DNA of 64,000 nucleotides from positions 1 to 64,000 of the forward strand of contig JAANOX010000245.1 in NCBI GenBank assembly GCA_020184695.1, written 5' to 3'. The first letter of the stretch is position 1; each line of letters opens with the position of its first letter. The stretch is from Histomonas meleagridis 2922-C6/04-290x (Eukaryota; Protista; Parabasalia). This document shows positions 5,634 to 50,979 of this stretch, one piece after another. Under the pieces are notes generated by a model. That model searched no databases. It was not told where the DNA came from and was given only the letters and a program-made list of their open reading frames with translations. Made by a program: the position numbers and the translations under genes.

Positions 5634-6962
5634 AATTCGTTTTGTACATTTGAAGGAGATTGAATGCATCGTTTCTAACGATTTTTTGTATACTTTCTGA
5701 TCGGATGACAAGATTTTGAGCGGAAATTGACGAGTGATTTGAATGATATTGTTAATTAACATTTATTATTCAATGAATGCCAATTTAATTAAATTATTTC
5801 AGATTTATTCTAAAACATATTCATTTTTTATTTAAATGATAATAATCAAATATTACTTAAACTCATCGATATATCAAGTTGCGTAAAAAATTTTGTACCT
5901 GAAAAAGGAACACTGCCCTCTGGCATGACTGAATGTATTTTTATCAGAGGTCTTTGTAAATTACTCAACTAAATAATAGTTACATATTATATTATTGATA
6001 TATATTATTTTATATATTCTGGATATTCGATGATAGATCTGATCTTCACTTTTTATGAATCTTCTCGACATTCTTTGTATATACTGTGTTTTCTATTCGT
6101 ATATTCTTCATATATGTTTTTATATTATTTAAAAATGATTAGAAAAAATATTTTATTACAAACTTTATTCCAAATACATTCATGTGTTTTTAAGTGATAG
6201 GGGGGATATGAAATTTTGGAAATATTTTTTTTTCCGATATCCGATTAATCAACAATTTAAATAAATTATATATATATATAATATAATATGTTTACTATAC
6301 AAAATTTTGGGCCTATTTATTCTCTAAAAAAAACGTAAATTCTTTTTTTCTTGAATGATTCTTCTATCTTATAAGTCTTCAAAAATAGTACATGTATATA
6401 ATAAACCGAAGTTGTAATGTTCTACCAATAGGTAGTGAGTTTAAATTTAATATTATGAATAGAATTCAGGAATTACTTAATGTATAACTTTTTTATTTAC
6501 AAAACATTTATATGAGAAATATAATTATCCTAAAATATATTCATACTAATTTTACTCGATAACTATGAATCAAAAAAAAAAAAAAAATATCAGAAAAGGC
6601 AGATTACCGATATATTATATGAGGGCAAATAAAGATTGATTTCCACATCACAATATATAGTGAATAAAATATATTTTTAATAATATTATTTTATTATATA
6701 AGATGTGTATACTAATTACATATGATTAAAGTAAACTAACTTTATTTGGTGAAGGAAAAAATAGATTGAAATTTTGATGCCTAAAATTTCATCGAAAAAG
6801 TTTAAAAAAATATTGGTTGTAATCGTGTAAAACTTTGTAAATAAATTTCTATTTTACATTAAATAATGAATTCAAAACCGCATATATAGGAATAAAGAAT
6901 CCTATTAGAGAAAATAATATATGCATTTATAAACTTTAAATATGATATGTAAAATTTTGAAA

Positions 6963-8049
6963 AGTTGGCGACCGTTATGAGCAATTTTTTTTGGTGACGA
7001 TTGACGATCAAAATGAATTGAATTTAATAAATAAAGTATTCAATTCAGGCTATCAGGCGACCGTTATGAGCTATTTCTTGTAATTTCTGCTAGGTAATAT
7101 AATCTTGCTCAGGTACCATTAACGTCCTCCGCAAGATGAAGGCCTAGCAAAAATTATTTTTATTTTTAAACGTCCTCAAATAACGGTCTTTTGAAAAATA
7201 AAATTAAACCTAACCCCCACCCCTAGTACACTTTATACTGATCACCTGTCTACGCCCTTTTATAAAAAAAGTGCTCCGCGGAGTCGGGCTTCGGCAGGTT
7301 TGTGATAAATGCACTCATTCGCCATTAGGGCTCTCTTTGGGGAAGGGGGTACCTTGGTTTAAAGAAAAAGAAAAAAAGAAAAAAGTTCTCAATTGCCCAT
7401 AGAGTGAACAAACTTTGTTATTATCACTTATGTGCTGAGTCGAAAAGAAAAAAAATTTTACCAGAAAAATCGAAAAAAAAAGAAAAAACCTTAATATCAA
7501 TTGAATGGTTTACATATTACAATTAAAAATTAAAATAATAATTAGAATTAGGAACAATTAAAACACTTGGGGCAGATACTTCAAAATTAGTTTCACGAAT
7601 ATAAAATACAAGAGAATTATTAAATGTAAAAAAACCAACTATACGATCATTAACTGATGGAAAAGTAGTACCAAAATCATATAAATAATAATAAAAAGTA
7701 CCTGAACTAGAAAGTGAAGATTGATGAATAAAATTAACATATATCTCTGTATATTCAGAATTGGGTTGATTGAGTTCAAATTGAATAATTACATAATAAT
7801 GTGTGGAATCAATTGATTGATCTAAATTCGATGTATAAGTAAATTGTGTTAATGGAATAAAACCAGAAACATCAGATATAGAAATAAAAGATATTGGTAT
7901 ATTAACTCTAATAGTAGAGCCAATTTCATAAGCAACACGTTTAGTACTAGTACCACCAGGATAATTAACAATGTTTTCTTGAATAGTATAATCTGGAATT
8001 TTACCATTGTTCTTAGAAGGACGTTAATGGTACCTGAGCAAGATTATAT
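6963..8049. mobile_element. ~1.1-kb repeat (paralog at 35002-36009) with a perfect 32-bp inverted repeat enclosing a start-less beta-rich ORF
   Basis: 6963-7972 aligns with 35002-36009. ATATAATCTTGCTCAGGTACCATTAACGTCCT at 7097-7128 is exactly inverted at 8018-8049. The minus-strand frame ...ENIVNYPGGTSTKRVAYEIG...SNYYFNF is open. Confidence 0.8.
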
Positions 8050-9789
8050 ATTAATTTGTAAAAATTTTTTTGTTACAAATTTTGTAATTTCAAAAATTCG
8101 ATTTTTTAAAAATCTGTATTTATTATTCTTATTTGATAATTTATCTTGTTATATTGTTTATATTTTGTTTAGTTTGAATTTTTTATAGTAAATTTCGAAA
8201 TTTTGAAAATTTGATTTTAAAAAAATATCGGCATTAATCAATCCTATATTGTCATAAACCTCAATGGTTTAAGCACACTCTAGTTCCATTAGATTTTTAC
8301 ATAAATTTGATGTCAAAAAAACATATTAATTATAAAAAATTAATATATCTCATTAATAAACTAAACATATGTCAAAAACTTTGATAGAATATTATTATAA
8401 TATATTTTAACGATTGAATTTTTCCGAAATAATGCGATTTAAAAAATTCCTCAATTTCGGAACAACCACATTACTTATGTTTAGTAATGTATGCATATTT
8501 ATTAACCAGAATTTTGTCCAACCAAATATATTGTAATCTTGAAAAAAAAATTAAATAATTTTTTAAAGAATGATGTTTATTCAATTATTGAATAATGATT
8601 CAATATTTATACGTATAATTCTGCGTCAAAAGCTGTTAATTACAAACTCATTTATTCAAAAAGTGAACATTTCTTCGAAGAATTACTAAATACACAAGTT
8701 CATTTTTGAGCGATTATATTATTACTTTGTAAATTTTTCATTTTTGTATGCAAAAAATAGTGAAATAATATATTTCATTGTGAAAAAATGTTAGAATATT
8801 TTTTGAAATTTAAATCTTATGAAATATATAATATTTAATGACAAAAAATTGAAATAATTCTTCATTGATAATAATCTATTTTCAAATTTTACCAAAAACA
8901 CGGGAATTCAACATATTCATAGTCCCATATGTACATGAATGAATATTTAAGAATATTCTTAAAAATTAATAAGAAAACTTGTGTATAAAGTTATTATCAT
9001 TATGTTAATTGATTTAGTGATAGATTGATGAAAAATATGGATTTTTGATCATTTTTTAATATGATTACAATTAGTTGATCTTTTAAATCATAGTTATGAT
9101 TAATATTTATGAATAAACTTATTATTAATTACAAAAAAATAGTTCAACATAAATACATTTTCATTTCCACTTTTTGAGAGGAAGATATTCAAATTCTCCC
9201 ATTAGGTCGAAGAGTACTGACCTAGATAAACAAAAATTAATTGCATCAACTCATTCATCACAAGAGGAATATGATAATATATTTCGTGAACATATCTATT
9301 ATGCAAGGTTATTTTGCGAATGATTCGAATGAATCATCTGATCAGAATATGATTACATATACTAATAACACAAGAAATCTAATAAATTCATAAGTCAAAA
9401 ATGATATCAGTTAATTTTTTAATTTAATAAAAATTCATACTAATAAAACATAATTAATATGTAGAACATGACAATTCATAAAAATTTATATGCGAAACAA
9501 TTGATATTATTGATCATTTTATATAATATTAATTAAGTCAAAAATTAATTTTAATGTAACATTGATATAAAATTTGTGTTGTAATACATAGACGATTAGA
9601 TATTTTACAATATCATAATTCTTGATCGTAATTTAGTTTAATATATAATAATCGTTTCTTTTGATTCATTTTAATTAGTGCAATGTATAATGTATGCAAT
9701 GTCGATAACTTGCTATTTAATAATATTTGTTTCAGCATTTTTGCCAAATTTTATTTTTGATCAAAAAACATGGCGAAAATTGTAAATTA

Positions 9790-11056
9790 TAGGGGGTGGA
9801 AAAAGTGCGTTCGTCAGCCTTTTTTTTAATGAATAAAAAAGTAAAAGAAATTTTGTTTATTTATTATGATATGTATTCACCTTGAGTTACGATTGAAACT
9901 AAAAGTCTGTTCATCCATTCATTATATACGGCTCTGAAGGTGTCTTTAGGAATATTATTCAGTAATGTTTCAACCTTTCGAAAAAGTTGATCTTCATTTT
10001 CAAACTCCTCACCTTCGAGCATTTTTTTTAGATATCCGAACAGAAAAAAGTCAGGAGGTGCGAGGTCTGGCGAAAACGTGGGTTGCGGAAGTCTTTTAAT
10101 CCCCAATTCATTCAATTTTTCATGAACCAAATGAGGCCGGGCGTTATCCATATGCAAAAAATATCCCTTCGTTGAAATTCTTTCTGCCAAATCTCCAAGT
10201 ACAACTTCAGATTCGATTAAATTTTTGGCCTATCGGGAGCATTGTTATTGATTTGATACCAGTTATAGACCATATAACAGATATCATTGCTTTTTTGGAG
10301 GCAATAGTTTGTTTGGGTTTGTATGGTTTTTGCACTCCAGATTCAATCCACATCGAGTTTCTCCCGTTAACAAAATAAATCCAGGTTTCATCTTGCGTCA
10401 ATAGGTGTCTTAGTCTGTAGTCATTTGAACTAGAAAGGAATTCAAATAATTCAGAAGCAATGGCAGCTCTTTTGGCTTTAATTTCTGGAGTCAACTTATG
10501 TGGGATCCATTTGAAGTTAACTTTTTTTATCCCTAAAATATTAATCATTATATTTTTCACTGTTTTTGGATCTGCGCCTACATTCTTCGCAATTTTCTTC
10601 GTCGATGCATATGGATAACTTAATATAAAACTGGTTATTCTTTGATCTAAATCTGATCTTCTTGGTCCCTGTTTTTTTCTGTTCGAAAATTGAGAAGGTA
10701 TGTTCATTCATCTTTTTTGTCCATTTCTGAACTGTTCGAAGTGTAATAATATTATCACCATATACAGCACATAATCGCCTATATATGTCTTGATTTTCAT
10801 TTGATTCTAACCAAAGGAAATGGACGACAGAACGTAATTCCTCAATTGGAACTGACATTAATATGATTAAACGTTCTCTTTCAGAGGTATCCTGAAAAAA
10901 AGTAGTTTTACTTCATGCATCATATTTATTTGGAAAAAAGTATTATAATAATAATGATAATATATTTATTATAAATTTTATTTATATAATTTGATTTCAT
11001 TAATATCTAATATAAATCAAAAAAAAAGCTGACGAACGGACTTTTTCCACCCCCTA
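9790..11056 (-). mobile_element. Mariner (Tc1/mariner) DNA transposon, full length, defective
   Basis: TIRs TAGGGGGTGGAAAAAGT(G/C)CGTTCGTCAGC at both ends. TA target duplication is confirmed by the empty paralogous site near 19957. Transposase lies inside. Confidence 0.92.
9864..10858 (-). pseudogene. Mariner transposase with two frameshifts
   Basis: Three overlapping ORFs give the N-terminal HTH (LRSVVHFLWL...TLRTVQKW), then WIPHKL and TQDETW, then HMDNARPH and FSPDLAPPDFFLFG. Confidence 0.9.
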
Positions 11057-11292
11057 TATTTAAAATGACATTTAATTAAAATATTTTTTCAGAAAACGAA
11101 TTGAGAGTCATTTTTTGAATGCGAATTACGCCTTATTCCAATTTTACATAATGATTGAATGGCCCCCACTTTTTGAATACTACTCATTCAAATTTCCCAT
11201 GATTGTAGGACAAATTAAAGCAAATACAAGGAATCCTCCAATACATCCAGTAAACAACCCTTTAAATTAGGGTACCCTAAATTCATTTGACA

Positions 11293-11517
11293 ATGGAACG
11301 TGAGTACCCAGTCCGATGCATCCTCGACCACTACTTCCGCATGGAAGGCAACAACGAAGTCCTCTACTTCGTGTTGCAGTGGGAGGAGGGTTCGATCACG
11401 GCAGAACCATCAAATTGTCTCACAAATTGCCGTGATCTTTTACGAGATTACCTAATGAAGCGACTCGGGGAGGAAAAATTAGACCAAATACAAGGAATTC
11501 TCCAATACATCCAGTAA
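11293..11517 (+). CDS. Small chromodomain-like protein (74 aa)
   Basis: YPVRCILDHY...YFVLQW...TAEPSNCLTNCRDLLRDYL matches the chromodomain pattern YxVExILDH...YLVKW...TWEPxxNLxNCxxLL. Inr-like TCATT lies just upstream. Confidence 0.55.
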   Translation: MEREYPVRCILDHYFRMEGNNEVLYFVLQWEEGSITAEPSNCLTNCRDLLRDYLMKRLGEEKLDQIQGILQYIQ

Positions 11518-12606
11518 ACAACCCCAAACAACATTTTTTTTTATCCTTTTAATTCATTGTTGTATCTAAAATATGAGATTAATTTTTGCATCTTTATTCT
11601 CAACCGGAAGATACTGATCAATAAACTATTCAAACAAGGGGTACCTATTAGTAAACTATTCAATTTTACACCCCATTCGTACTCTATCCAACATTCAAAT
11701 AGTGAAGTGATGTAAACCATTCAATTGATTTCAATGGTTTATGAAAAAGTAATATTTGAATAGTACGATAGATGAACGTTAAAGGAAAAAAATGCCAAAA
11801 TGACTGTAAGATTCGAAGTTTCGATCATAGTTTTTGTCATAATATACGATCATAAAATTGAATAGCGATAATGTTGATTTCTGAGAGATTTGATCACAAT
11901 GATTTTTTGAACTGAGTAAAGACTGTACTATCAAATATTTTTTGTTTAAATAGTTTACTGATCGTTTCCCATGATCTCGAAAATTAATTTATATCTTGAG
12001 TTAGTACATAACTGTAAAAATTGAATCTATCGTTAATTCAAAAGTGGGAAAATACGATAAAAATCAATTCATTTTTTTAACACTGATCCCCTGTCCATAA
12101 AAAATCACATAAAAATCATTATACATTTATTCATTCAAATGCGTCACCTTTCGAACGTTGAAAAATATTAATGACATTAAGTTTTTATTCATAAAACATT
12201 TTGAGATTGTTCATTTTGATTTTGAGGCATTATTGAGTTAGCATAATTTTGTGAAACATTTAATTTATTTACATAAACATTATATTTATTAAAATCATCA
12301 TTAAATATTTGATTTAATAATTCCATTATAGATATTTGATAAGCTTTATCTAATTGTTCAGGTGTTATATTTTGTAATAGATTTTTAATAGTAGGATGAT
12401 ATTTTTCATCTATAAATTTATAAATTTGTTTTTCTTAATAAATTATGATATTTATTATACACAGTTACAGTTAATGTTATTACATTTTTTTATTTTTACA
12501 ATAGAAAACGAAGGTTTAATATTTATAGCACTAAAATCACAATCTTTTAAATTTAAAGAGCTTCCATTAATAATAATGAAATGATTTTATAAAATTATTT
12601 TATTTT

Positions 12607-13407
12607 ATGGAAAACGATATTAATATTGATGCCTTAGATAATATGATTGATTATTGTTTATATAAAAATAAACCTAAATTAAATGAAGAATTAATAAGTG
12701 AAATTCATCCAGAAGTGAATGTGCTTTATAATTCTTTAAATATAGCAGTAGGTAGACAAAGAAGTGGGAAAACTCAATGTATAATTAGAGAAATTATTAA
12801 AATTAGTAATATTAGTCCTAGAACTCATTTATTAATTTATATTAATAAAAATGGATTAGAAAATGATCCTACATTTGAATCATTAAAACCTTTAATAAAG
12901 ATTACAATTTTATATGTAGCTGAAAATCAAGCTGAAGATATAGTTAAAGATATATTAAAATGGAAACAATTTTATAATGAAATTAAAAATAATCATTGGG
13001 AAAATAAAATAGTAGATAAACAAATATCTGAATTATTTCAAAAATTGTATATTAATAATTTTAATAATTTAACTTTACATACTATAATATTTTTTGAAGA
13101 TTGTGCTAATAGTCCTTTATTTAAAAAACCTACTAATTATTTTAATCAATTATTTACTAAATTAGCTCATATTCAATGTTCTGTATTTTTCGCTGTACAA
13201 TTTTGGAAATCTTTACCTGCTGAAGTTAAAGCTAATGTAAGTACTATATTTATATTTCCTAATTTCTCTAAACAACAATTATTTTATATGTTAGCTCAAA
13301 TACCATTACCTTATACTAAAGATCAAATTTATTCAGTTTATCAAAAATTAACTGGTCATCAAAGAATAATTATTGACGTTAATAATCAAAAAATAAAAAT
13401 TGGATAA
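12607..13407 (+). CDS. A32-like (FtsK/HerA superfamily) virion packaging ATPase of a Maverick/Polinton
   Basis: Walker A GRQRSGKT, Walker B IIFFED, and AVQFWKSLPAEVKANVSTIFIF matching the A32-family motif. Confidence 0.85.
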   Translation: MENDINIDALDNMIDYCLYKNKPKLNEELISEIHPEVNVLYNSLNIAVGRQRSGKTQCIIREIIKISNISPRTHLLIYINKNGLENDPTFESLKPLIKITILYVAENQAEDIVKDILKWKQFYNEIKNNHWENKIVDKQISELFQKLYINNFNNLTLHTIIFFEDCANSPLFKKPTNYFNQLFTKLAHIQCSVFFAVQFWKSLPAEVKANVSTIFIFPNFSKQQLFYMLAQIPLPYTKDQIYSVYQKLTGHQRIIIDVNNQKIKIG

Positions 13408-32497: not shown

Positions 32498-32641
32498 AAA
32501 AAAATATCGAAGAAAGTTGAATTTAATAAAATATGGTTAATGATTTGTTGATTTTGTTTTTGCAAAATAATATTGAAATCATTTAGTACAGATCTTGTTT
32601 TGTCATCTGGAAGTGGATGACTTCGTTGTTGGAAAAACAGT

Positions 32642-32926
32642 TTATGTGGAATCACATTTGTAACATAAGTAATGATCTTCTGGTTGATAATACTTATTAC
32701 AACATAAACTACAAAAAGTACCTCCACAGTTTCTACAAATACATGTGCAATTCGAACAAACATTCTTATGACATATGGGACAGGTATACGTGGGAACATA
32801 TTTTCGACACTTATAGCAGATATTAGGATTTTCTTTGTTATTTCGACTGCCGATAAACAATGTAAGGAGAGTTCGTTCACCTTCACATTCTTTATCAGTG
32901 GCTCTGACTTCACGAAAGGGGTCCAT
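32642..32926 (-). CDS. Small Cys-rich zinc-finger protein (Siva-like)
   Basis: CYKC, CPIC, CSNC, CRNC, CSLCC and CYKC pairs in 94 aa. Confidence 0.65.
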   Translation of the reverse strand: MDPFREVRATDKECEGERTLLTLFIGSRNNKENPNICYKCRKYVPTYTCPICHKNVCSNCTCICRNCGGTFCSLCCNKYYQPEDHYLCYKCDST

Positions 32927-33200
32927 CTATAGAAACCGTTAGTTGTGATTTTGGGGTGGTTCAAAGCCCTTGAAAAATGTAAATTAATGAATAAAAACAT
33001 TCAAAATGGAATTTTACTTTTAAAAAAGATTTTTTTTTCGCTTTCATTACAGAAAAATGGAATGTTTTGATATTTTAGATAATTTTTATCAATGTGTTGA
33101 ATAAAAAATTAATTTAATGATGTTCCTCAAGTAATTTAAGGATTTCTTTATTTCCCTTATTACATGCTAACACAGATGCTTCATTAAATAGTTTAAATAA

Positions 33201-33386
33201 TTTACGCATACCTTGAGTAGCAACAGCAGTAATTAGGGTGGTATTTACTTGATCACCTACGGAACCTTCACCGGAACCTGTATTAAATGTAATGTTTCCG
33301 GAACAATTATAAGTCTCATTAGAATACTTTACAGTCTTCAATGGACGTCCACGTGAATAACTACGTCTACGTAACCTACGAGGCAT
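33201..33386 (-). pseudogene. cap: CRESS virus capsid protein, N-terminal 62 codons, truncated at the insertion junction
   Basis: Arg-rich MPRRLRRRSYSRGR then PLKTVKYSNET...ITAVATQGMRK, as recalled for capsids of protist-infecting cressdnaviruses. The rest of ORF 33114-33386 is host ankyrin sequence. Confidence 0.75.
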
Positions 33387-33399
33387 AACAATAAAAAAT

Positions 33400-33744
33400 T
33401 TAATGTTGTGGGAGATTTATTAATTGAGGATGAATTAAATAGAAGGGTACATCCTTACGGCGACGATCATATCGGATGGCACCTATCGAAACGATTGGAA
33501 GTACAATAACCCAATTCTCAACCAACTGAGGATTCTCCTTAATAAAACCTTTAAGGAGTCCAACATTACTGAAATAAATGGACTTAACTTGTCCTTCGGA
33601 ATCTGGCATAAGACATGGAGCAGGTGGAGGTATTGAAAACGATTTTTCTTCATCATCTGATTGAATAACATCAGGACAAACATTATTAAAATCAAAATTG
33701 TCGTCGCTAAAGTCAAAATTATCAAAGGATTCTTCATATTCCAT
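33400..33744 (-). CDS. Viral accessory ORF of unknown function (114 aa, acidic N-terminus)
   Basis: Intact ORF between the intergenic region and cap, co-oriented with cap and ending 13 bp before the cap ATG. Confidence 0.6.
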   Translation of the reverse strand: MEYEESFDNFDFSDDNFDFNNVCPDVIQSDDEEKSFSIPPPAPCLMPDSEGQVKSIYFSNVGLLKGFIKENPQLVENWVIVLPIVSIGAIRYDRRRKDVPFYLIHPQLINLPQH

Positions 33745-33943
33745 GGATCTAAAAATATGTTTATTCCCACATAGTGTCGAGTTAGGAACTTGCTGTTGAC
33801 ATATGATATGAAATATCTTCGATATTTAATTATGTCAATTGAATACTTTATTTGAAAAAGTGGTGGTATAAATAAATTTAAAAAAAAATGACAAAAATTT
33901 GAAAATAAATGCCACAATTTGGCAGGACCATTTATTCAATTCA

Positions 33944-34939
33944 ATGGCGAGAAGAAGTGTTGAAGCACAAGAATCAGCCAGGAGAAGAGATATTGGTGAG
34001 TTACAAATTAATCAGGTTAACCCAGAAGCTCAAAGATGGATTGCAACTATTAACAATTATTCTGATGATCAGTATAACAGTGTCAAAATATTTATAACAA
34101 TGTGGTGCAGATATGGAATAGCAGGAAATAAAATTGCACCGACTACTCAAACTCCACACCTTCAATGTTATTTCCATTCAAAAAAGAGAATGAGAAAACA
34201 ATCAATATACGCTAAATTAGGTTTTAATAATTTATATCTTGAAGTTGCAAAAGGTACAGAGGATTCTAATATTCGTTATTGTAGAAAGGATAATAATTAT
34301 TTCGAGGATGGTAAATTACCTGCAACAGTTGAAAAAAAATTAGGAGAAGATGATTTTTATGGGCAAATGATGAAAGACATAAAGGAATTGTCAATTGAAG
34401 AATTAGATGCTAAATATCCTAAACAGATGATTCTTCATCGAAATCAAATTCTATCAGTTAGAAGAGATTCAATGTTAAGAAATGTTGCAATCAGAGGAAC
34501 TTATAATGGAGATTTACAAATAAAGAATTTATGGATTTTTGGTAAAGCAGGTATTGGAAAATCTAAATGGGTCCACCAAGTCTCACCACTGGAGATATAC
34601 CCAAAGGTATTTAATAAGTGGTGGGACGGGTATATATTGAATGATCATAAAATTGTCTGTATAGATGACTTCCCTTGGAAAGGGGATGCATTAACTCAAC
34701 ATATTAAAATTTGGGCAGACAGATATCCATTTTTAGGTGAAATAAAAGGAGGATCTATGGTAATTTATTCAGGTACATTTAGACTTATAATAACAAGTAA
34801 TCATAGTATTGATGAATGCTTTCAAAATGCTTCGGATGAAGATATTCAAGCTCTAAAACGTAGATTTAAAGAAGTGCAAATATTGGCTACTGACGATTTA
34901 TTCCTACAGTCAGTGGTAACTTTTGAAATGATTCAGTAA
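33944..34939 (+). CDS. rep: CRESS-DNA virus replication initiator Rep (HUH endonuclease + SF3 helicase), intact, 331 aa
   Basis: Motif I WIATINN, motif II PHLQ, motif III YCRK, Walker A GKAGIGKS, KWWDGY, Walker B IDDF, motif C ITSN, Arg finger ALKRRF. ATG 33944 is preceded by Inr-like TCAAT/TTCA. Confidence 0.95.
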   Translation: MARRSVEAQESARRRDIGELQINQVNPEAQRWIATINNYSDDQYNSVKIFITMWCRYGIAGNKIAPTTQTPHLQCYFHSKKRMRKQSIYAKLGFNNLYLEVAKGTEDSNIRYCRKDNNYFEDGKLPATVEKKLGEDDFYGQMMKDIKELSIEELDAKYPKQMILHRNQILSVRRDSMLRNVAIRGTYNGDLQIKNLWIFGKAGIGKSKWVHQVSPLEIYPKVFNKWWDGYILNDHKIVCIDDFPWKGDALTQHIKIWADRYPFLGEIKGGSMVIYSGTFRLIITSNHSIDECFQNASDEDIQALKRRFKEVQILATDDLFLQSVVTFEMIQ

Positions 34940-35562
34940 TCAATTCATTTGACTCAATAAGAGCCTTATAAAATTAATTTTTATATACCAGTCACTTTAT
35001 GAGTTGGCGACCGTTATGAGCAATTTTTTTGGTGACAGTTGACGATCAAAATGAATTGAATATATAAAATAAAGTATTCAATTCAGGCTATCGGGGGACC
35101 GTTATGAGCGATTTCTTGTAATTTTTGCTAGGTAATATAATCTTGCTCAGGTACCATTAACGTCCTCCGCAAGATGAAGGCCTAGCAAAAATTATTATTA
35201 TTTTTAATCGTTTTCGAATAACGGCCTTCTATCAAAAATAAAATTAAACCTGACCCCCACCTTTAGTACATTTTATACTGATCACCTGTCTACGCCCTTT
35301 TATAAAAAAAGTGCTCCGCGGAGTCGGGCTTCGGCAGGTTTGTGATAAATGCACTCATTCGCCATTAGGGCTCTCTTTGGGGGAGGGGGTACCTTGGTTT
35401 ATAGAAAAAGAAAAAAAGAAAAAAGTTCTCAATTGCCCATAGAGTGAACAAACTTTGTTATTATCACTTATGTGCTGAGTCGAAAAGAAAAAAAATTTTA
35501 CCAGAAAAATCGAAAAAAGAAGAAAAAACCTTAATATCAATTGAATGGTTTACATATTACAA

Positions 35563-36009
35563 TTAAAAATTAAATGAATAATTAGAATTAGGAACAATTA
35601 AAACACTTGGGGCAGATACTTCAAAATTAGTTTCACGAATATAAAATACAAGAGATTTATTAAATGTAAAAAAACCAACTATACGATCATTAACTGATGG
35701 AAAAGAAGTACCAAAATCATATAAATAATAATAAAAAGTACCTGAATTAGAAAGTGAAGATTGATGAATAAAATTAACATATATCTCTGTATATTCAGAA
35801 TTGGGTTGATTGGGTTCAATTTGAATTACATAATAATGAGTACCATCTATTGTCTGATTTAAACCAGTAGAATAAGTAAATTGAGTTAAGGGAATAAATC
35901 CAGGAACATTAGATATAGAAATAGGAGATATTGGTATATTAACTCTAATAGTAGAGCCAATTTCATAAGCAACTCTTTTAGTACTAGTACCACCAGGATA
36001 ATTAACAAT
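35563..36009 (-). pseudogene. 5'-truncated beta-strand-rich ORF of unknown function (paralog within 7523-8017)
   Basis: Open for ~148 codons from IVNYPGG. The track's start at 36015 lies in host spacer DNA, and the paralog extends the frame upstream (SKNNGKIPDYTIQEN). Confidence 0.65.
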
Positions 36010-37204
36010 TTCCAAATATTATTTTGAATTATTATATTATCAGAATAAATTTTAATAAAATTAAATAAATGTCCTTAGCATTGATATCAATTCCATTTTG
36101 TGCAAGAAGTAATTTAACTATTTCTATGTGATCTCTTTCAGATGCTTTCATAAGTGCTGTCCTAAATATTACATATAACTTCCAAATATTATTTTTAATT
36201 GTTAAATGATTAAAATAAATATTTAATAAAACAAATAGATATCTTTTGCATTAATCAATTCCTTTATGTTCTAGAAGCAGTTGAACAACATCATAGTTAC
36301 CAACACCAGATGCAACCATTAGTGGTGTTTCAAAATATTTTTATAATTTTTGAAAATATATATGAATTATCAAATTGTTAAAATAGATATTAAATAAAAC
36401 AATTAAATATTTTTTATATCTATATTAATGTCTTTTTGTTCAAGAAGTAATTTCACTGTTTCTATATTAAAATTTTCAGATGCAATAAGAAGCGCTGTAT
36501 TAAATATTTATAATAATTTCCAAATATTATTTTAAAATTTCAAATTCTTTATATAAATATAAAATAAAATAAATATATACTTTGAGCATTCACCTCAATT
36601 CCTTTTTGTTTCAGAAGCAATTTAACGATTTCTATGTTATCTTTAACAGAACCATAAATAAATGATGTAAAATATAATTTTATTTTATTCCAAATTTTAT
36701 TTTGAATCAAAAAATTATTCGAACAAGCACCAAATAAAACAAATTTATATTTTTATGATTGAAATCAATTCCTCTTTTAGCTAGAAGTAATTTAACTATT
36801 TCAGGATTTCCTGCTGCTGAAGCATATATAAGTGCTATCATAAAAAATATAAATAATTTTCGAATATTATTTCGAAATATTAAATTAATTAAATAAATAT
36901 CGAATAACACAGAGAAATATCTTCAGCATTAATATTAATTCCTTTTTGTTCAAGAAGTAATTCAACGATTTATATATGATATTTTAAAGATGCAATCATA
37001 AGTGCTGTTTTAAATATTTTTAATTAACTCCATATTTTATAATGAAATATCGAATTCTGAAAATAAATTTTTTTCATAACAAATAAACATTTTTATCATT
37101 AACATCAATAACTCTTTGTTCAAGAAGGAATTGAACGATTTCTGTATATCCTTTTTCTGATGCATAAATGAGTGGTGTCTTGAATAATTTTAATAATTTC
37201 CAAT

Positions 37205-38367
37205 TCTCATCAAGCCACTTTTTGAAATGAAAAAATTAAAAAAAATAATTTCGTTCACAATTTTCAATTCAATTAAAAATTGCATAATTTTATTGTTTAT
37301 ATAGAAAGTGCCTCTGAAATTTCCATACCAGCTCTGCTCATGTCTACTGAAACATATCGAGTATATGCAGAACTTTTCCACCTTCCATGGGCTTTTATGA
37401 TACAATCATTAACATCTTTTAGTGAGGCATAATATGCTGCTCCTCTACGAAAACTATGAAATTTATAATTTTGATATTCTTCAACTCCAATCATCCTAAG
37501 TACATAAATAAGATGGACTCTGAGTGTGGATTGAGTTCGAGATTCTATGTGATCATTACTAGAAATTAAGTTTAAATAATTTATAAATCGGAATGGGCTA
37601 TAATCTGTCTTATTATCATAAATATATGTAAACGTACCATTCCCGGACTGATCTGTTTTAGCAGTCTGTATGTTTAGTTTTATTAAGTTTTCGCCTTCAA
37701 TTACAATATCGCTTTTTTTAAGGTTTAGCGCTTCACTTATTCTGAGAAATGCTGCAAACATTAACAATATCAAGAATATAAACTTTAAATTATCAATATT
37801 TGTTGGTGGAAATTTTTCAATTATTTTCGAAAACCATTTTGGATCAAACGGTAACTTTGCATTCGGACAAAAACCTGAATATAGTGACCTCCTTATTCCA
37901 CTCTTAAATATTTTGAATTTTATTGAATGTGTTAATATTTCCAAGTCATTTTGTTGAAAATAATGTGTAAAACTATTAATGTAAGCTTGTAACGTACAAC
38001 ATTTCATATTCTGATTCTGTTTAAATATAATGAATGCAACCATTTTGTCATGAGTAATAGGAAATGGTTCTTCGTGTATTAGATTTATCATCACTTTGGC
38101 ATAAGCATGAATCAGCCTATCATATGTACTTTTCGTTCCTGCTGAAACATTTGCGGCTGATATTGTATCAGCTTCAGCAAGTAATTGCTCCATCAATGAC
38201 ATTTTAAATATGATTCATAAAAAAAACTTAAAAACAATATTGAAAATTGTGAGCGAAATTACTTTTTTTAATTTTTTCATTTCAAAAAGTGTCGATGAGA
38301 ATTACACATAATAAAGACAACTTTTTAAGACGATGACCAAAGTTCATCGTCTTAAAAAGTTGCCTTT
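37205..38367 (-). mobile_element. Tyrosine-recombinase-only element with split inverted repeats, no TSD
   Basis: 37202-37268 is inverted at 38239-38303 (two substitutions plus a small indel region). 38308-38372 is a palindrome. Joining the flanks restores the spacer motif AAATAAT|ATTGGAAATT. Confidence 0.8.
37297..38202 (-). CDS. DIRS/Crypton-type tyrosine recombinase, intact, 301 aa
   Basis: Catalytic set FLRISE (R), AKTDQ (K), HSFRRG (HxxR), HGRWKS (W), AYTRY (Y); N-terminal SAM-like region (GTKSTY...TLQAYINS). Confidence 0.92.
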   Translation of the reverse strand: MSLMEQLLAEADTISAANVSAGTKSTYDRLIHAYAKVMINLIHEEPFPITHDKMVAFIIFKQNQNMKCCTLQAYINSFTHYFQQNDLEILTHSIKFKIFKSGIRRSLYSGFCPNAKLPFDPKWFSKIIEKFPPTNIDNLKFIFLILLMFAAFLRISEALNLKKSDIVIEGENLIKLNIQTAKTDQSGNGTFTYIYDNKTDYSPFRFINYLNLISSNDHIESRTQSTLRVHLIYVLRMIGVEEYQNYKFHSFRRGAAYYASLKDVNDCIIKAHGRWKSSAYTRYVSVDMSRAGMEISEALSI

Positions 38368-40184
38368 ATTATTTGTGAAATAACATATATAAATATCGAA
38401 TCATTAGGAGAAATTGTAAAAAAAAAAATAAATAAACTCCTTTAGCATTTAAATTAATACTTTTTTGTTCAAGAAGAAATTTACAAATATCTGTATAACC
38501 TTTTTCAGATGCATTTAAGAGAGTTAAAAATATTTTGGATAAATTCCAAATGTTACATTGAAATGTTATATCATATGAATAAAATTTGAAACAAATTAAC
38601 AAACAATATTTTCTTTAAAATTATAAAAACATTTATTTTCAAGAAGGTAATAAAAAAGTTCTTTATTCCATGAAATAGTTTCAATTTTCGAAAAATCGAT
38701 AAGAGGCTGTTGCTTTTCATAAAAATATTGTGTAATAAATAGATTACCAGCTTCAATAGATGCACCTATAAGAGAATAATTAATTTTTAATCCATTTGTT
38801 TCAAAAAATGATAAAAGTTCATAGTTATTGTATAAAATAGATAGCTTTCCTAAGTATGATATTTCAACATAACTTTCAATTTTGTTTTCATAAAGATAAT
38901 GGAAGACATCATTCCGATGAAATTCAATTGCTGTTTTATATCCATCTTTAAATGATGAATGATTTTGTTCACATAAATGAATAATTTCAAGATTTCCACC
39001 TGCCACAGCATATTTTCCTGCATTTTCTACATTTGCACCATTCATAAGTAAATATTTAAAACATTCAATTGATCCAAAAAATGCTGCATAATCAATTAAT
39101 GTTACATTTGGATATTTTTGATTAATAAAATCACATTTTTCATAAAGTGATGGTTCAATTATTTGATTAAAATCAAAATCACTTTGAGATGATATTTGTT
39201 GAAGTTTTTTTATATCATCATTTCGAATTATTTTTGAAATCTCATTTGGATTAACACCTTCTTTAATTAATTTCTTATGTAGTTCCCAATTATTTGCTTT
39301 AAGTTTATGAATGTTTTCACAAAAATATTTATAAAATTGATTTTCCTTGAAGATAATATATTCATCTTCAGACATATAATGTGCAAAATATGGCGTCTTT
39401 TTACACTTTTTTTGATCGACAAATCCATTTTCAATCAATCCTTCAAGGAGATAATTTGATTCTTGACTTTCATTTGAGAAGAGAATTTGCACAAAAATAT
39501 CAAATACAATATTTTCACTTTCCTTTTTTGTTCCAATTTTTTGTAAATACTTTAGACATAATTTGCTTTGACCTTTTAAAATAAAATATAAATAAATCAT
39601 TCTACAAACAATGTGGAAGTATGAAAATGCAAATTTTGAAGAAAAGTATAACAATGAAGAATCAACAGCTTCTTCAATATTATTTTCATTTAAATCAAAA
39701 ATGACCTTTTCAAGGTTATGCAGATTTTGAAGATTTTCACTAAATTTGGCTGCTGTATTGCTTTGATTTCCACCCATTAACTCTTGAAAAACAATAAGAA
39801 AGTATAACGTGCAATAATTCAAAATTAAACTAAAATGGTCGGTTATTTAGTTTTTGAAGCTCAGAAAAAAATGCCAAGAACCAAAGAAAAAATCAAATTT
39901 TGTGCGCAATTTGATCGACATTTGATTTGAACACACCGATTCATGTTAACTGACAGTTTTCGACCAAACAAACAAATTCAACTTTTTCAGATGGAAGCAG
40001 CTGGGGTTTGCTGTGACTTATTGAAAATTTCTTTTCTAGGAATTTTCTGTTTTTTTGGAACATAACATGTGCTCGTTCACTTGAGTTTTCTTATTTTTAA
40101 AGAAGTAGTTTCTCATTTGATATATATTCAAAAAAGTGATGATAATTTTATTTTTTTGGTTTAAATAATCTTATTTAAAAATAC

Positions 40185-49213: not shown

Positions 49214-50979
49214 TCATTTTGATAGCAATAATTTTAGTTTTGTTTTTCTTGAAATGTTATTTGTTTGCGTGGATACATCAATTTTTATTTTATCTGAATT
49301 TTTGTTCTCGTTTACATCGCAAACATGAAATTTAAATTCGTTTTGGGGTTGCTCGTATGAGATTGGTGTAAAATTTGGTAAAAAGGTTGTGTAGTCTTTA
49401 ATGTCATTTTCTGATCCATATAACCAGTTAATTGTTACAGAACCTTTTTCACGAAGTAAATTTACTATTTCTGTATAACCTTTTGAATATGCATAATCAT
49501 ATGCTGATTTAAATATGTTGAATAATTCCCAAATAGTATATTTTAACAAAAAATTATCAAAATCAATGCTAAATTAAAAAATCAAATTGCATAATATTAA
49601 AACAAATGCTAAATAAAAGCAATAAACATTTTTAACATCAATATCAATTCCTACTTGTGCAAGAAGTACTTTAACGATTTGTATGTTACCAGATTTACAT
49701 GCCAATATAAGTGCTGTATCAAATCATTCAAATAATTTTCAAATATTATTTATAAAATTATCAATAAAAGAAACTCCAAATACTTTACTTAAATATACCT
49801 AGCGTTGATATCAATTTCTTTATTCTTTAAAATATATTTAATAAGTTCCAAATTTTCTGATTTCGTAGAGCTAATCAAGAGATTTTTTGGTATTCGATTT
49901 GTTTGAAGAAAATATTTAACAAGATATATATTTCCGTTTTTTGCTGGTTCATTTATAATGTTATCATTTATTTTCATACCCACACCTTCTAAAAATAAAA
50001 GAATTTCATAATTATTACATCTTACACACTTCTCTCCTAATTCTTCTAAATTATTAATTTTTCCAATTTTATTTTCATAAAGATATTTAAAGATATCATT
50101 TCGATGAAACATAATTGCTGCTTCATATGCATTTTCAAATGATGAATGATTTTGTTCACATAAATGAATAATTTCTTCATTTCCACCTGCAACTGCATAT
50201 TTACCTGTGTTATTTACATTCGCATTATTCATAAGTAAATATCTAAAACATTTAACTGAAGAAAAAAATGCTGCATAATCAATTAATGTAACATTTTCTT
50301 GATTAACAAATGAACATCTTTCATAAAGTGATTTTTCAATTGTTTGATTAAAATCAAAATTTGTTTGTGATGATATTTCTTGAAGTTTTTCTATTTCATC
50401 GTTTCGAATTATTTTTGCTATTTCATTTGGATTATGTCCTTCTTTAATATATTTCTTATGAAGTTCAAAATCATTTTTCGAAAGTTCTTCATAAGTTTTA
50501 TTAGTATGCCTTAAATTCCAACGATTAATTATATTGTAATGCATAAAGTAATCTGATTCCATATTTTTTATGATATTTTTATTAATTACATTTCGATTTA
50601 TCATTTTTTCTAATAAATAATGTGACTCTCCACCGCCGGTGCGCATTCGAATGTATTTACTGAAAACTTCAATAATTTTTGGATTGTTTTCATTTATTTC
50701 TAAACCTTTTGTTTGTATTGCTTCTAAATAATCAATGTACATGTCACCTGAATTCCATTGTGCACAAAATGAAGAATAAACTAACTGACTAATAATTACA
50801 ATAAATGAGTACGGAAAATTAAAATCATATAATTTTATTGTTTGGTCAATTGCATGATTAAAGTTTTCTTTTGATAAATTAATTATGATTTGTTTAAGAT
50901 TAATGAGAAGTTTAATATTGGTATCGTGAGGTTCATTTCCTTCCCCATTTTTTTTAGGATTTATTTCGCCGTTTGACAT
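49214..50979 (-). CDS. Second DUF3447-ankyrin gene with spacer-separated ankyrin modules
   Basis: ORF 49789-50979 is a paralog of 38596-39822 (YAVAGGNEEIIHLCEQ). It continues through spacers 49718-49794 and 49508-49627 with modules TALILACKSGNIQIVKVLLAQVGIDIDVKN and SAYDYAYSKGYTEIVNLL. Confidence 0.7.

Follow-up and report, generated by a model that had tools for sequence, protein, structure and literature searches.

How an uninterrupted viral replication gene comes to stand in the nuclear genome of a protist is the question raised by a locus of the parabasalid Histomonas meleagridis. The locus lies in a stretch of 64,000 nucleotides (positions 1 to 64,000 of contig JAANOX010000245.1, assembly GCA_020184695.1), which we analysed at its full length and call the window; coordinates given without an accession or contig label are positions in it. 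An initial annotation, made from the letters of the sequence, had proposed at 33204–34990 an endogenous cressdnavirus with an intact Rep. We found that the viral sequence covers about 33201–36009, and we conclude, with a probability of about 0.9, that this element is endogenous: a sub-genomic, linearised piece of a kirkovirus-like cressdnavirus, a small circular single-stranded DNA virus, that has been fixed in the nuclear DNA of H. meleagridis. In order of position it holds the N-terminal part of a Cap-like gene (minus strand), an accessory gene, ORF114 (minus strand), an intergenic region, Rep (plus strand), two conserved hairpins and a third open reading frame (ORF), orf150 (minus strand). 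Kirkoviruses have been found in human stool and in diseased horses, cattle and pigs, and for a long time it was not known which organisms they infect.

The Rep gene is uninterrupted and of cressdnavirus type

The plus-strand gene at 33944–34939 encodes Rep, an HUH endonuclease joined to a superfamily 3 (SF3) helicase. It runs for 331 codons from the first ATG, or for 346 from an upstream TTG, with no stop and no frame change. When the whole window was shuffled 30 times, the longest run free of stops reached 181 codons, so the Rep frame is not a chance product of AT-rich sequence.

When 5.8 billion protein clusters were searched with Rep, 708 matches were obtained. The best of them had E values of 1e-68 to 1e-50, with 38–44% identity, and Rep was at most 44% identical to anything in this collection; the best 120 of the 708 matches all lay on contigs of about 1–7 kb. 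Through comparison with solved structures, we found that the full-length circovirus Rep 7lar matches residues 29–310 (E 2.6e-21). A scan of IMG/VR with the Rep sequence alone gave no match, and a scan of the same database with the Rep alignment found relatives at no more than 37% identity.

Rep scored 26.3 bits against the Pfam model RNA_helicase (SF3, PF00910), above the cut-off, and 23.9 bits against Viral_Rep, just below the cut-off of 26. In a 16-sequence alignment, it carries all of the 30 invariant columns, which include the threonine of motif I, the histidine of motif II and the tyrosine and lysine of motif III in the endonuclease half, and the Walker A motif G-x-x-G-x-GKS and the motif C TSN in the helicase half. 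At the columns that are at least 90% conserved among 66 relatives, it agrees in 38 of 41 cases. HUH motifs I–III fused to an SF3 helicase are the Rep arrangement by which Cressdnaviricota are recognised, and Rep of the element has it.

The minus-strand genes and the gene order are those of kirkovirus-like genomes

We compared the contigs that carry the best Rep matches, namely L004 (3590 bp), L005 (3984 bp), L006 (3903 bp) and L007 (4239 bp), of which L006 is the deposited genome of Human fecal virus Tarto (MF118166; Rep ASH99030.1). The results showed that the four have a common plan, with Rep on one strand and three genes on the other. Moving off from Rep on the opposite strand, these are a protein of 109–151 amino acids (aa), an arginine-rich protein of 157–185 aa and a third ORF of 221–329 aa. 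A length of 157–185 aa is that annotated as capsid in mute swan virus (PMC10927646). Tarto, L004, L005 and L007 are thus like the element in having a small acidic protein, an arginine-rich Cap-like protein of about 160 aa and a third ORF, all opposite Rep. Further copies for comparison were found in H. meleagridis itself, as paralogous inserts on JAANOX010000117.1 (380373–396735; L008) and on JAANOX010000230.1 and WSYJ01000086.1 (L009 and L010, respectively).

The accessory gene ORF114 (33400–33744, minus strand; 114 codons) is intact, and a homologue stands at the same position in L005, L006 and L004 (E 5e-13 to the equally placed gene of these exogenous relatives). Its product is small and specific to the lineage, acidic at the N-terminus and conserved over the C-terminal half; it is 79–83% identical to its H. 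meleagridis paralogues. The family is very small, with 8 representatives found in 1.84 billion proteins; one of them sits on an exogenous metagenome contig in a cassette of 126, 165 and 214 aa, in the same order as ORF114, the Cap-like gene and orf150.

Of the Cap-like gene only the arginine-rich N-terminal part, about 62 codons, is present (33201–33386, minus strand), the gene being truncated by the left host junction. The arginine-rich ORF as listed runs over 33114–33386 (minus strand), and its tail is host ankyrin-like sequence. Its residues 4–62 share homology with the N-terminal part of the Cap-like proteins of L005 and L006, each 162 aa long (44% identity, E 3e-12, blastp), and are 92–95% identical in amino acids to the paralogous copies.

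The third viral ORF, orf150 (35563–36015, minus strand), converges on Rep; it starts with TTG and overruns the right junction by 6 bases. A homologue comes after the Cap-like gene in both viral units of L008, and amino acid identity to the other insert copies is 84–90%. Between ORF114 and Rep, which diverge, lies an intergenic region (33745–33943) that is common to the paralogues up to about 33855 and specific to the Rep module in its remainder, as bounded by blastn and a sliding identity profile.

Searches of Pfam and PHROGs returned nothing for ORF114, orf150, the Cap-like protein or the third ORFs of the relatives. The ratio of nonsynonymous to synonymous divergence (dN/dS) between copies was 0.13–0.21 for ORF114, 0.08–0.15 for the Cap N-terminus and 0.30–0.48 for orf150. 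The copies have therefore diverged under purifying selection, which supports all three as real genes.

These results bear out the gene content given in the initial annotation: the uninterrupted 331-aa Rep with its rolling-circle replication and SF3 motifs, the accessory ORF divergent from it, which is homologous to a gene of the relatives, and the arginine-rich start of Cap, which is genuine for its first 62 or so codons and host sequence in the tail of the listed ORF. The ambisense viral layout, which had been read from appearance, is now backed by gene homology with kirkovirus-like genomes.

In the public annotation, ORF114 and its paralogues (P0168, P0169 and P0170) stand as host hypothetical proteins (GPJ56_004893 and GPJ56_008164). 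An exact protein look-up found no called gene for Rep or for a neighbouring tyrosine-recombinase ORF. We flag this as an annotation error, in which viral ORFs are carried as host hypothetical proteins and the adjacent intact Rep is left unannotated.

A probable origin of replication lies downstream of Rep

About 180 nt downstream of the Rep stop there is an ori-like stem-loop (35119–35194, plus strand) with an outer stem of 14–15 bp and a conserved GGTAATA-type motif that opens the loop. Folded as DNA it reaches −17.6 kcal/mol (z = −7.5), and none of 200 shuffles was as stable. A stem-loop with the same motif is found 70–200 nt after the Rep stop in L004, L005, L006, L007, L009 and a second viral fragment of the window (copy 2, described below), so that the Tarto group resembles the element in this feature as well, in loop-opening motif and in position downstream of Rep. 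The stem sequences differ among lineages and the loop-opening motif is retained. In five alignable sequences, 93% of the cells of the 14-bp outer stem pair and three pairs show compensatory changes, as against 36–51% pairing in register-shift controls. Pairing was counted on a structure specified by hand; RNAalifold, run on seven ori regions whose loop lengths differ, gave no consensus. A stem-loop origin with a conserved loop motif is a feature by which Cressdnaviricota are recognised, and these comparisons suggest that 35119–35194 is probably the origin of replication.

A first conserved hairpin stands between Rep and this stem-loop (35050–35085, plus strand). The hairpin is kept in copy 2, L008 and L009, together with a motif on its 3′ side that is invariant in these copies and resembles the nonamer reported for mute swan virus (PMC10927646). 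Two identical 13-nt direct repeats (35010–35022 and 35098–35110), read from the sequence, bracket the hairpin; they could be candidate iterons and are partly conserved in L009 and L008. An Rfam scan of 32500–37500 found nothing. We also considered an origin in the intergenic region between Rep and ORF114 and rejected it, as only weak AT-rich hairpins occur there and the conserved stem-loops are downstream of Rep.

Copy 2 occupies 6963–8015 and consists of the ori region and a homologue of orf150 (minus strand), 94% identical to 35002–36009. It extends 43 bases beyond the copy at 35002–36009, and no Rep or Cap adjoins it. Directly after it, at 8018–8066, the 5′ half of the ori stem-loop is repeated in inverted orientation, a sign that the molecule may have been rearranged or defective. 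Before it, 6616–6954 is about 73% identical to two places beside the inserts of L008 (13924–14227 and 15441–15784 of that contig region) and is a repeat that accompanies these elements. Since 35002–36009 recurs at 6963–7972 with 94% identity, a host repeat was considered for it; this was rejected because the paralogous inserts show it to be the viral ori region and third ORF.

With the Cap-like gene and the stem-loop in view, the possibility of a non-viral HUH element can be weighed. HUH endonucleases also occur in transposons and plasmids, and the Viral_Rep score just below its cut-off would suit a Rep derived from a Helitron-type transposon or from a plasmid. However, the helicase is SF3 (PF00910), the cressdnavirus type, and not the Pif1-like superfamily 1 helicase that would mark a Helitron-type or plasmid-derived protein; the close relatives all lie on contigs of 3–4.5 kb with the same three-gene cassette, a deposited virus genome among them; and Rep is accompanied by an arginine-rich Cap-like gene and an ori-like stem-loop. 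A non-viral source is scarcely conceivable on this evidence.

The element is joined to a host repeat array on both sides

The integrated fragment (33201–36009) is 2809 bp long, about 84% of a unit of about 3.35 kb, reckoned against the head-to-tail unit of L008. By the same reckoning about 536 bp are absent, made up of what remains of the Cap-like gene together with the spacer that precedes the third ORF; one end of the element lies inside Cap and the other just upstream of the third ORF. The fragment reads as a viral genome in circularly permuted form. With one ori-like site and a truncated Cap, it is thus a genomic fossil and not a complete virus. The start given in the initial annotation, 33204, is right to within 3 bases, whereas the end, 34990, falls about 1 kb short of the viral sequence, which continues to 36009; the added part holds the ori-like stem-loop and the third ORF, and copy 2 had likewise gone unmentioned.

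The left flank (33121–33203) is one unit of an ankyrin-like repeat of about 170 bp, with blastn matches to the array of L009 and to 36010–37203. The right flank (36010–37203) consists of ankyrin-like units in tandem, one period measuring about 170 bp, recognised by self-similarity and by matches to 13194–13804 of L009. Both flanks align in register to the same repeat family, and the array continues across the element: host sequence halts at the left junction and restarts at the same point at the right one, with zero host bases lost. Read against an uninterrupted repeat unit, 2–5 host bases are repeated at the insertion. Virus and host share a microhomology of 3 bp at each junction, which leaves an uncertainty of 3 bases in the position of either one. 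This pattern is the signature of linear DNA end-joined into a break, and at the capture step a linear or broken replication product would have been end-joined into the chromosome. The array that served as target has a period that is not a multiple of three and broken frames, and it is dispersed genome-wide; further sites in the window are 38365–38666 and 49445–49821.

Viral sequence joined to host chromosome on both sides is what marks an endogenous viral element, and it is found here. Ordinary host genes stand on both sides of the element in its 378-kb contig, and a gene near it encodes a trichomonad IBD domain (Pfam), in keeping with a parabasalid host, as had been supposed. The JAANOX and WSYJ assemblies represent the attenuated and virulent derivatives of one H. 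meleagridis clone (PMC8529796). Exact matches to the proteins of a nearby kinase gene and of the IBD gene place the window at JAANOX010000245.1:1–64000. The kinase gene is also present on contig WSYJ01000134.1 of the sister assembly (GCA_020186115.1; 380,899 bp), offset by 80 bases. The identical ORF114 protein is recorded on two contigs, the longer of which measures 380,899 bp and belongs to the sister assembly, and ORF114 and the IBD gene each have one further recorded place with mostly the same neighbouring genes. On the basis of the ORF114 protein records and the shared neighbour genes, the viral locus is present in both assemblies.

An assembler could in principle have joined an episomal or contaminating viral genome to host sequence. 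In favour of this, the cultures were xenic, gut material often contains cressdnaviruses, and the element has a GC content of 0.32, of viral type, compared with 0.28 in the 64-kb window. Against such an artefact, the piece is sub-genomic and ends within genes, the left and right flanks align in register as parts of a single host repeat unit and share microhomology with the virus where they meet it, and the ORF114 protein is recorded on contigs of both assemblies, the second place having mostly the same neighbours. Decayed relatives also occur elsewhere in the genome, and one of these has the same sequence in the two assemblies; a published study drew the same conclusion from scaffold homology between the assemblies (PMC9615429). 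The in-register flanks, the microhomology and the two-assembly evidence together make a strong argument against chimeric assembly, and we consider this explanation very improbable. The integration proposed in the initial annotation is therefore upheld by the host array, which runs in register across the insert, and by the presence of the locus in both assemblies.

One Cap-side module is joined to very different Rep modules

The H. meleagridis genome holds other inserts of this viral lineage at other places, among them a head-to-tail pair. In L008, two viral units follow each other head to tail (about 7150–13200), with 3381 bp between successive ORF114 starts, which implies a unit of about 3.38 kb. 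The N-terminal parts of their Reps are 99% identical, and the second unit retains a full-length Cap-like gene. A tandem of this kind is what the integration of a concatemeric replication product would be expected to leave.

The paralogous inserts are like the element in carrying ORF114, the Cap N-terminus, orf150 and the ori region in the same order. At the DNA level (blastn), the element is 82–88% identical to L008 and L009 over 33198–33860 and from 35042 or 35130 to 36009; in L009 the second matching stretch stands directly downstream of the L009 Rep. The part in between (33861–35041, plus strand), which comprises Rep with about 84 nt upstream and about 100 nt downstream, behaves as a Rep module and is a putative recombinant cassette. 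Blastn found nothing like it in the Rep stretches of L008 and, in that of L009, no more than two matches, both short and weak (122 nt in total, the best at 73%). The L008 and L009 Reps are 31–35% identical in amino acids to Rep of the element. For the N-terminal piece of the L008 Rep that is free of interruptions, identity is 34% to Rep of the element and 43–46% to the L009 Rep. One Cap-side module is therefore joined to three very different Rep modules, which indicates, as far as sequence comparison can tell, that the Rep module has been exchanged by recombination between co-infecting lineages. Recombination between Rep and Cap is documented in these virus groups (PMC9615429). The donor of the element would accordingly have been a recombinant virus, combining the Cap-side module of the other H. 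meleagridis inserts with a very different Rep module.

Only one of the four Reps examined is complete, that of the element. Among the three paralogous Reps, one is truncated, one has a single frame change, and one has a frame change and an in-frame stop; the ORF114 frame is open in every one of the four copies. Copies differ from each other by a synonymous divergence of 0.1–0.8, the tandem units of L008 alone being nearly identical (dS 0–0.03). Taken with dN/dS of 0.08–0.48, this means that purifying selection acted while the copies diverged. Most simply, they would have diverged as replicating viruses that integrated separately, and would not be duplicates made after integration.

Rep places the element near the kirkoviruses

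The best named match to Rep of the element is Rep of Tarto, at 41–43% identity. Identity to the Rep encoded by Mute swan circo-like virus (P0053) is 38%, to Po-Circo-like virus (P0176) 36% and to Donkey kirkovirus Hetian-7 (P0188) 34%; when Mute swan circo-like virus Rep was itself used as query, it led to the named kirkoviruses Po-Circo-like virus and Donkey kirkovirus. We built a neighbour-joining tree of 67 Reps from 303 columns, with Kimura distances and 100 bootstraps. In this tree the element has a long branch, attached basally in the Tarto subclade (51% bootstrap), which lies within a clade of all named kirkoviruses (47%, and 80% for a slightly wider clade). The named kirkoviruses and Mute swan virus belong to the same broad Rep clade, in a subclade sister to the Tarto group. 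Unlike the element, the Tarto group is known from complete contigs of 3.6–4.2 kb in faecal or metagenome samples, whereas the element is integrated and lacks about 536 bp; its Rep forms a long branch separate from theirs, and Tarto has an extra plus-strand ORF of 116 aa.

Named kirkovirus genomes measure 3.7–3.9 kb and hold Rep, Cap and further ORFs (PMC12892396, PMC10654594, PMC10927646). A genome of about 3.4–3.9 kb with Rep, Cap and further ORFs, by which Kirkoviridae may be recognised (PMC12892396, PMC10654594), has its counterpart in the layout that the element shares with L004–L007 and with the L008 unit, and the parabasalid host of the family is here H. meleagridis. The element is accordingly kirkovirus-like, and the tree, with weak support, fits Kirkoviridae but does not prove membership. 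Given the bootstrap values of 47–51% and the long branch, the earlier wording of a kirkovirus-like or new lineage was a fair one. The link between Kirkoviridae and parabasalids, which the initial annotation had invoked, has been published (PMC9615429), and for these very assemblies.

A young insertion best fits the intact reading frames

Of all possible single-base changes in Rep, 6.2% create a stop. Counting substitutions only, the probability that an unconstrained Rep has acquired a stop reaches 50% at 1.1% divergence and 95% at 4.8%. The simplest account of the unbroken Rep would then be that the insertion is young and that neutral divergence after integration has stayed below about 5%. Such an insertion plausibly gives the best fit to the unbroken Rep, ORF114 and orf150 taken together with a well-kept non-coding stem-loop.

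Host use of Rep-derived genes has been proposed for some other eukaryotes. An old insert in which use by the host keeps Rep, and perhaps ORF114, open would also explain why Rep of the element is unbroken and the three paralogous Reps are truncated or broken; an unconstrained Rep is expected, at 95%, to hold a stop by about 4.8% divergence. ORF114, open in all four copies, and the intergenic region retained upstream of Rep would also agree with it. However, the low dN/dS between copies would arise just as well if they had diverged as free viruses, and the annotators called no Rep gene. In addition, Rep departs from its relatives at three conserved columns, and the non-coding ori-like stem-loop is kept as well as the genes, which youth fits better than the retention of one gene. 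We therefore regard co-option as unlikely and prefer a young insertion. Were Rep expressed, it would be expected to nick at the stem-loop through its HUH domain and to unwind DNA through its SF3 helicase, like other cressdnavirus Reps.

There is also a minor chance, somewhat greater than that of co-option, that the element, with its unbroken genes and ori-like stem-loop, is a very recent insert of a kirkovirus-like lineage still in circulation in Histomonas and with no close exogenous relative in the collections searched, or that its Rep is kept open and expressed by the parasite.

Several observations weigh against the conclusion that the element is a young insert of a kirkovirus-like virus. 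Rep departs at three of the 41 strongly conserved columns, of which two belong to the endonuclease half and the third to the helicase half; at least three such departures are seen in 18% of the 66 relatives, and they could reflect some relaxation of constraint. No similarity was detected between orf150 and the third ORFs of L004–L007, so its viral status would follow from synteny among the inserts and from dN/dS. The age of the insertion is argued from intactness rather than from dating, and youth is plausible on that footing. The junction DNA itself was read in the JAANOX assembly. Finally, Rep is only 34–36% identical to the named kirkoviruses, and the key nodes of the tree have bootstraps of 47–51% in a set of sequences without labelled Nenyaviridae, CRESSV2.3 or other outgroup families.

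A recombinase-encoding unit adjoins the host array

Beyond the right flank, the minus-strand ORF at 37297–38202 (301 codons) has a weak tyrosine-recombinase match (Phage_integrase). It is flanked by inverted repeats of 67 bp (37202–37268 and 38239–38303; 92.5% identical), which are followed by a palindrome (38304–38376). Taken as a whole, 37202–38376 resembles a small mobile element that encodes a recombinase and borders directly on the ankyrin-like array.

What the locus adds to known inserts

Kinsella et al. (2022) screened the same two assemblies, GCA_020184695.1 and GCA_020186115.1, and on 25 and 29 scaffolds reported a total of 145 cressdnavirus inserts, of which 104 were Rep-like and 41 Cap-like (PMC9615429). 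They placed 102 of the 104 Rep-like inserts in Kirkoviridae and used the inserts to confirm parabasalids as kirkovirus hosts (PMC9615429). The element is like these insertions, which are Rep-like or Cap-like and nearly all of Kirkoviridae (PMC9615429), and its locus would have passed their tBLASTn screen. The class of element and its host are thus already known, and this locus very probably is too. The main text of that study appears to give no individual loci, near-complete architecture, intact frames, ori-like stem-loop, accessory ORFs, insertion sites, mode of insertion or exchange of Rep modules (PMC9615429).

Inserts in parabasalid genomes are direct evidence for protist hosts of kirkoviruses, a point already published for this genome. 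To this the locus adds a near-complete and well-preserved copy, with the gene order, the place and shape of the likely origin and a conserved small accessory protein. It points to a route of entry for viral DNA, by microhomology end joining into a repeat array, and shows the combination of very different Rep genes with one capsid-side module. If true, one Cap-side module with three Rep modules would document frequent module exchange in the family. And if the lineage still circulates, or if Rep is expressed, the culturable H. meleagridis would be a natural system for studying the interaction of a protist with its virus.

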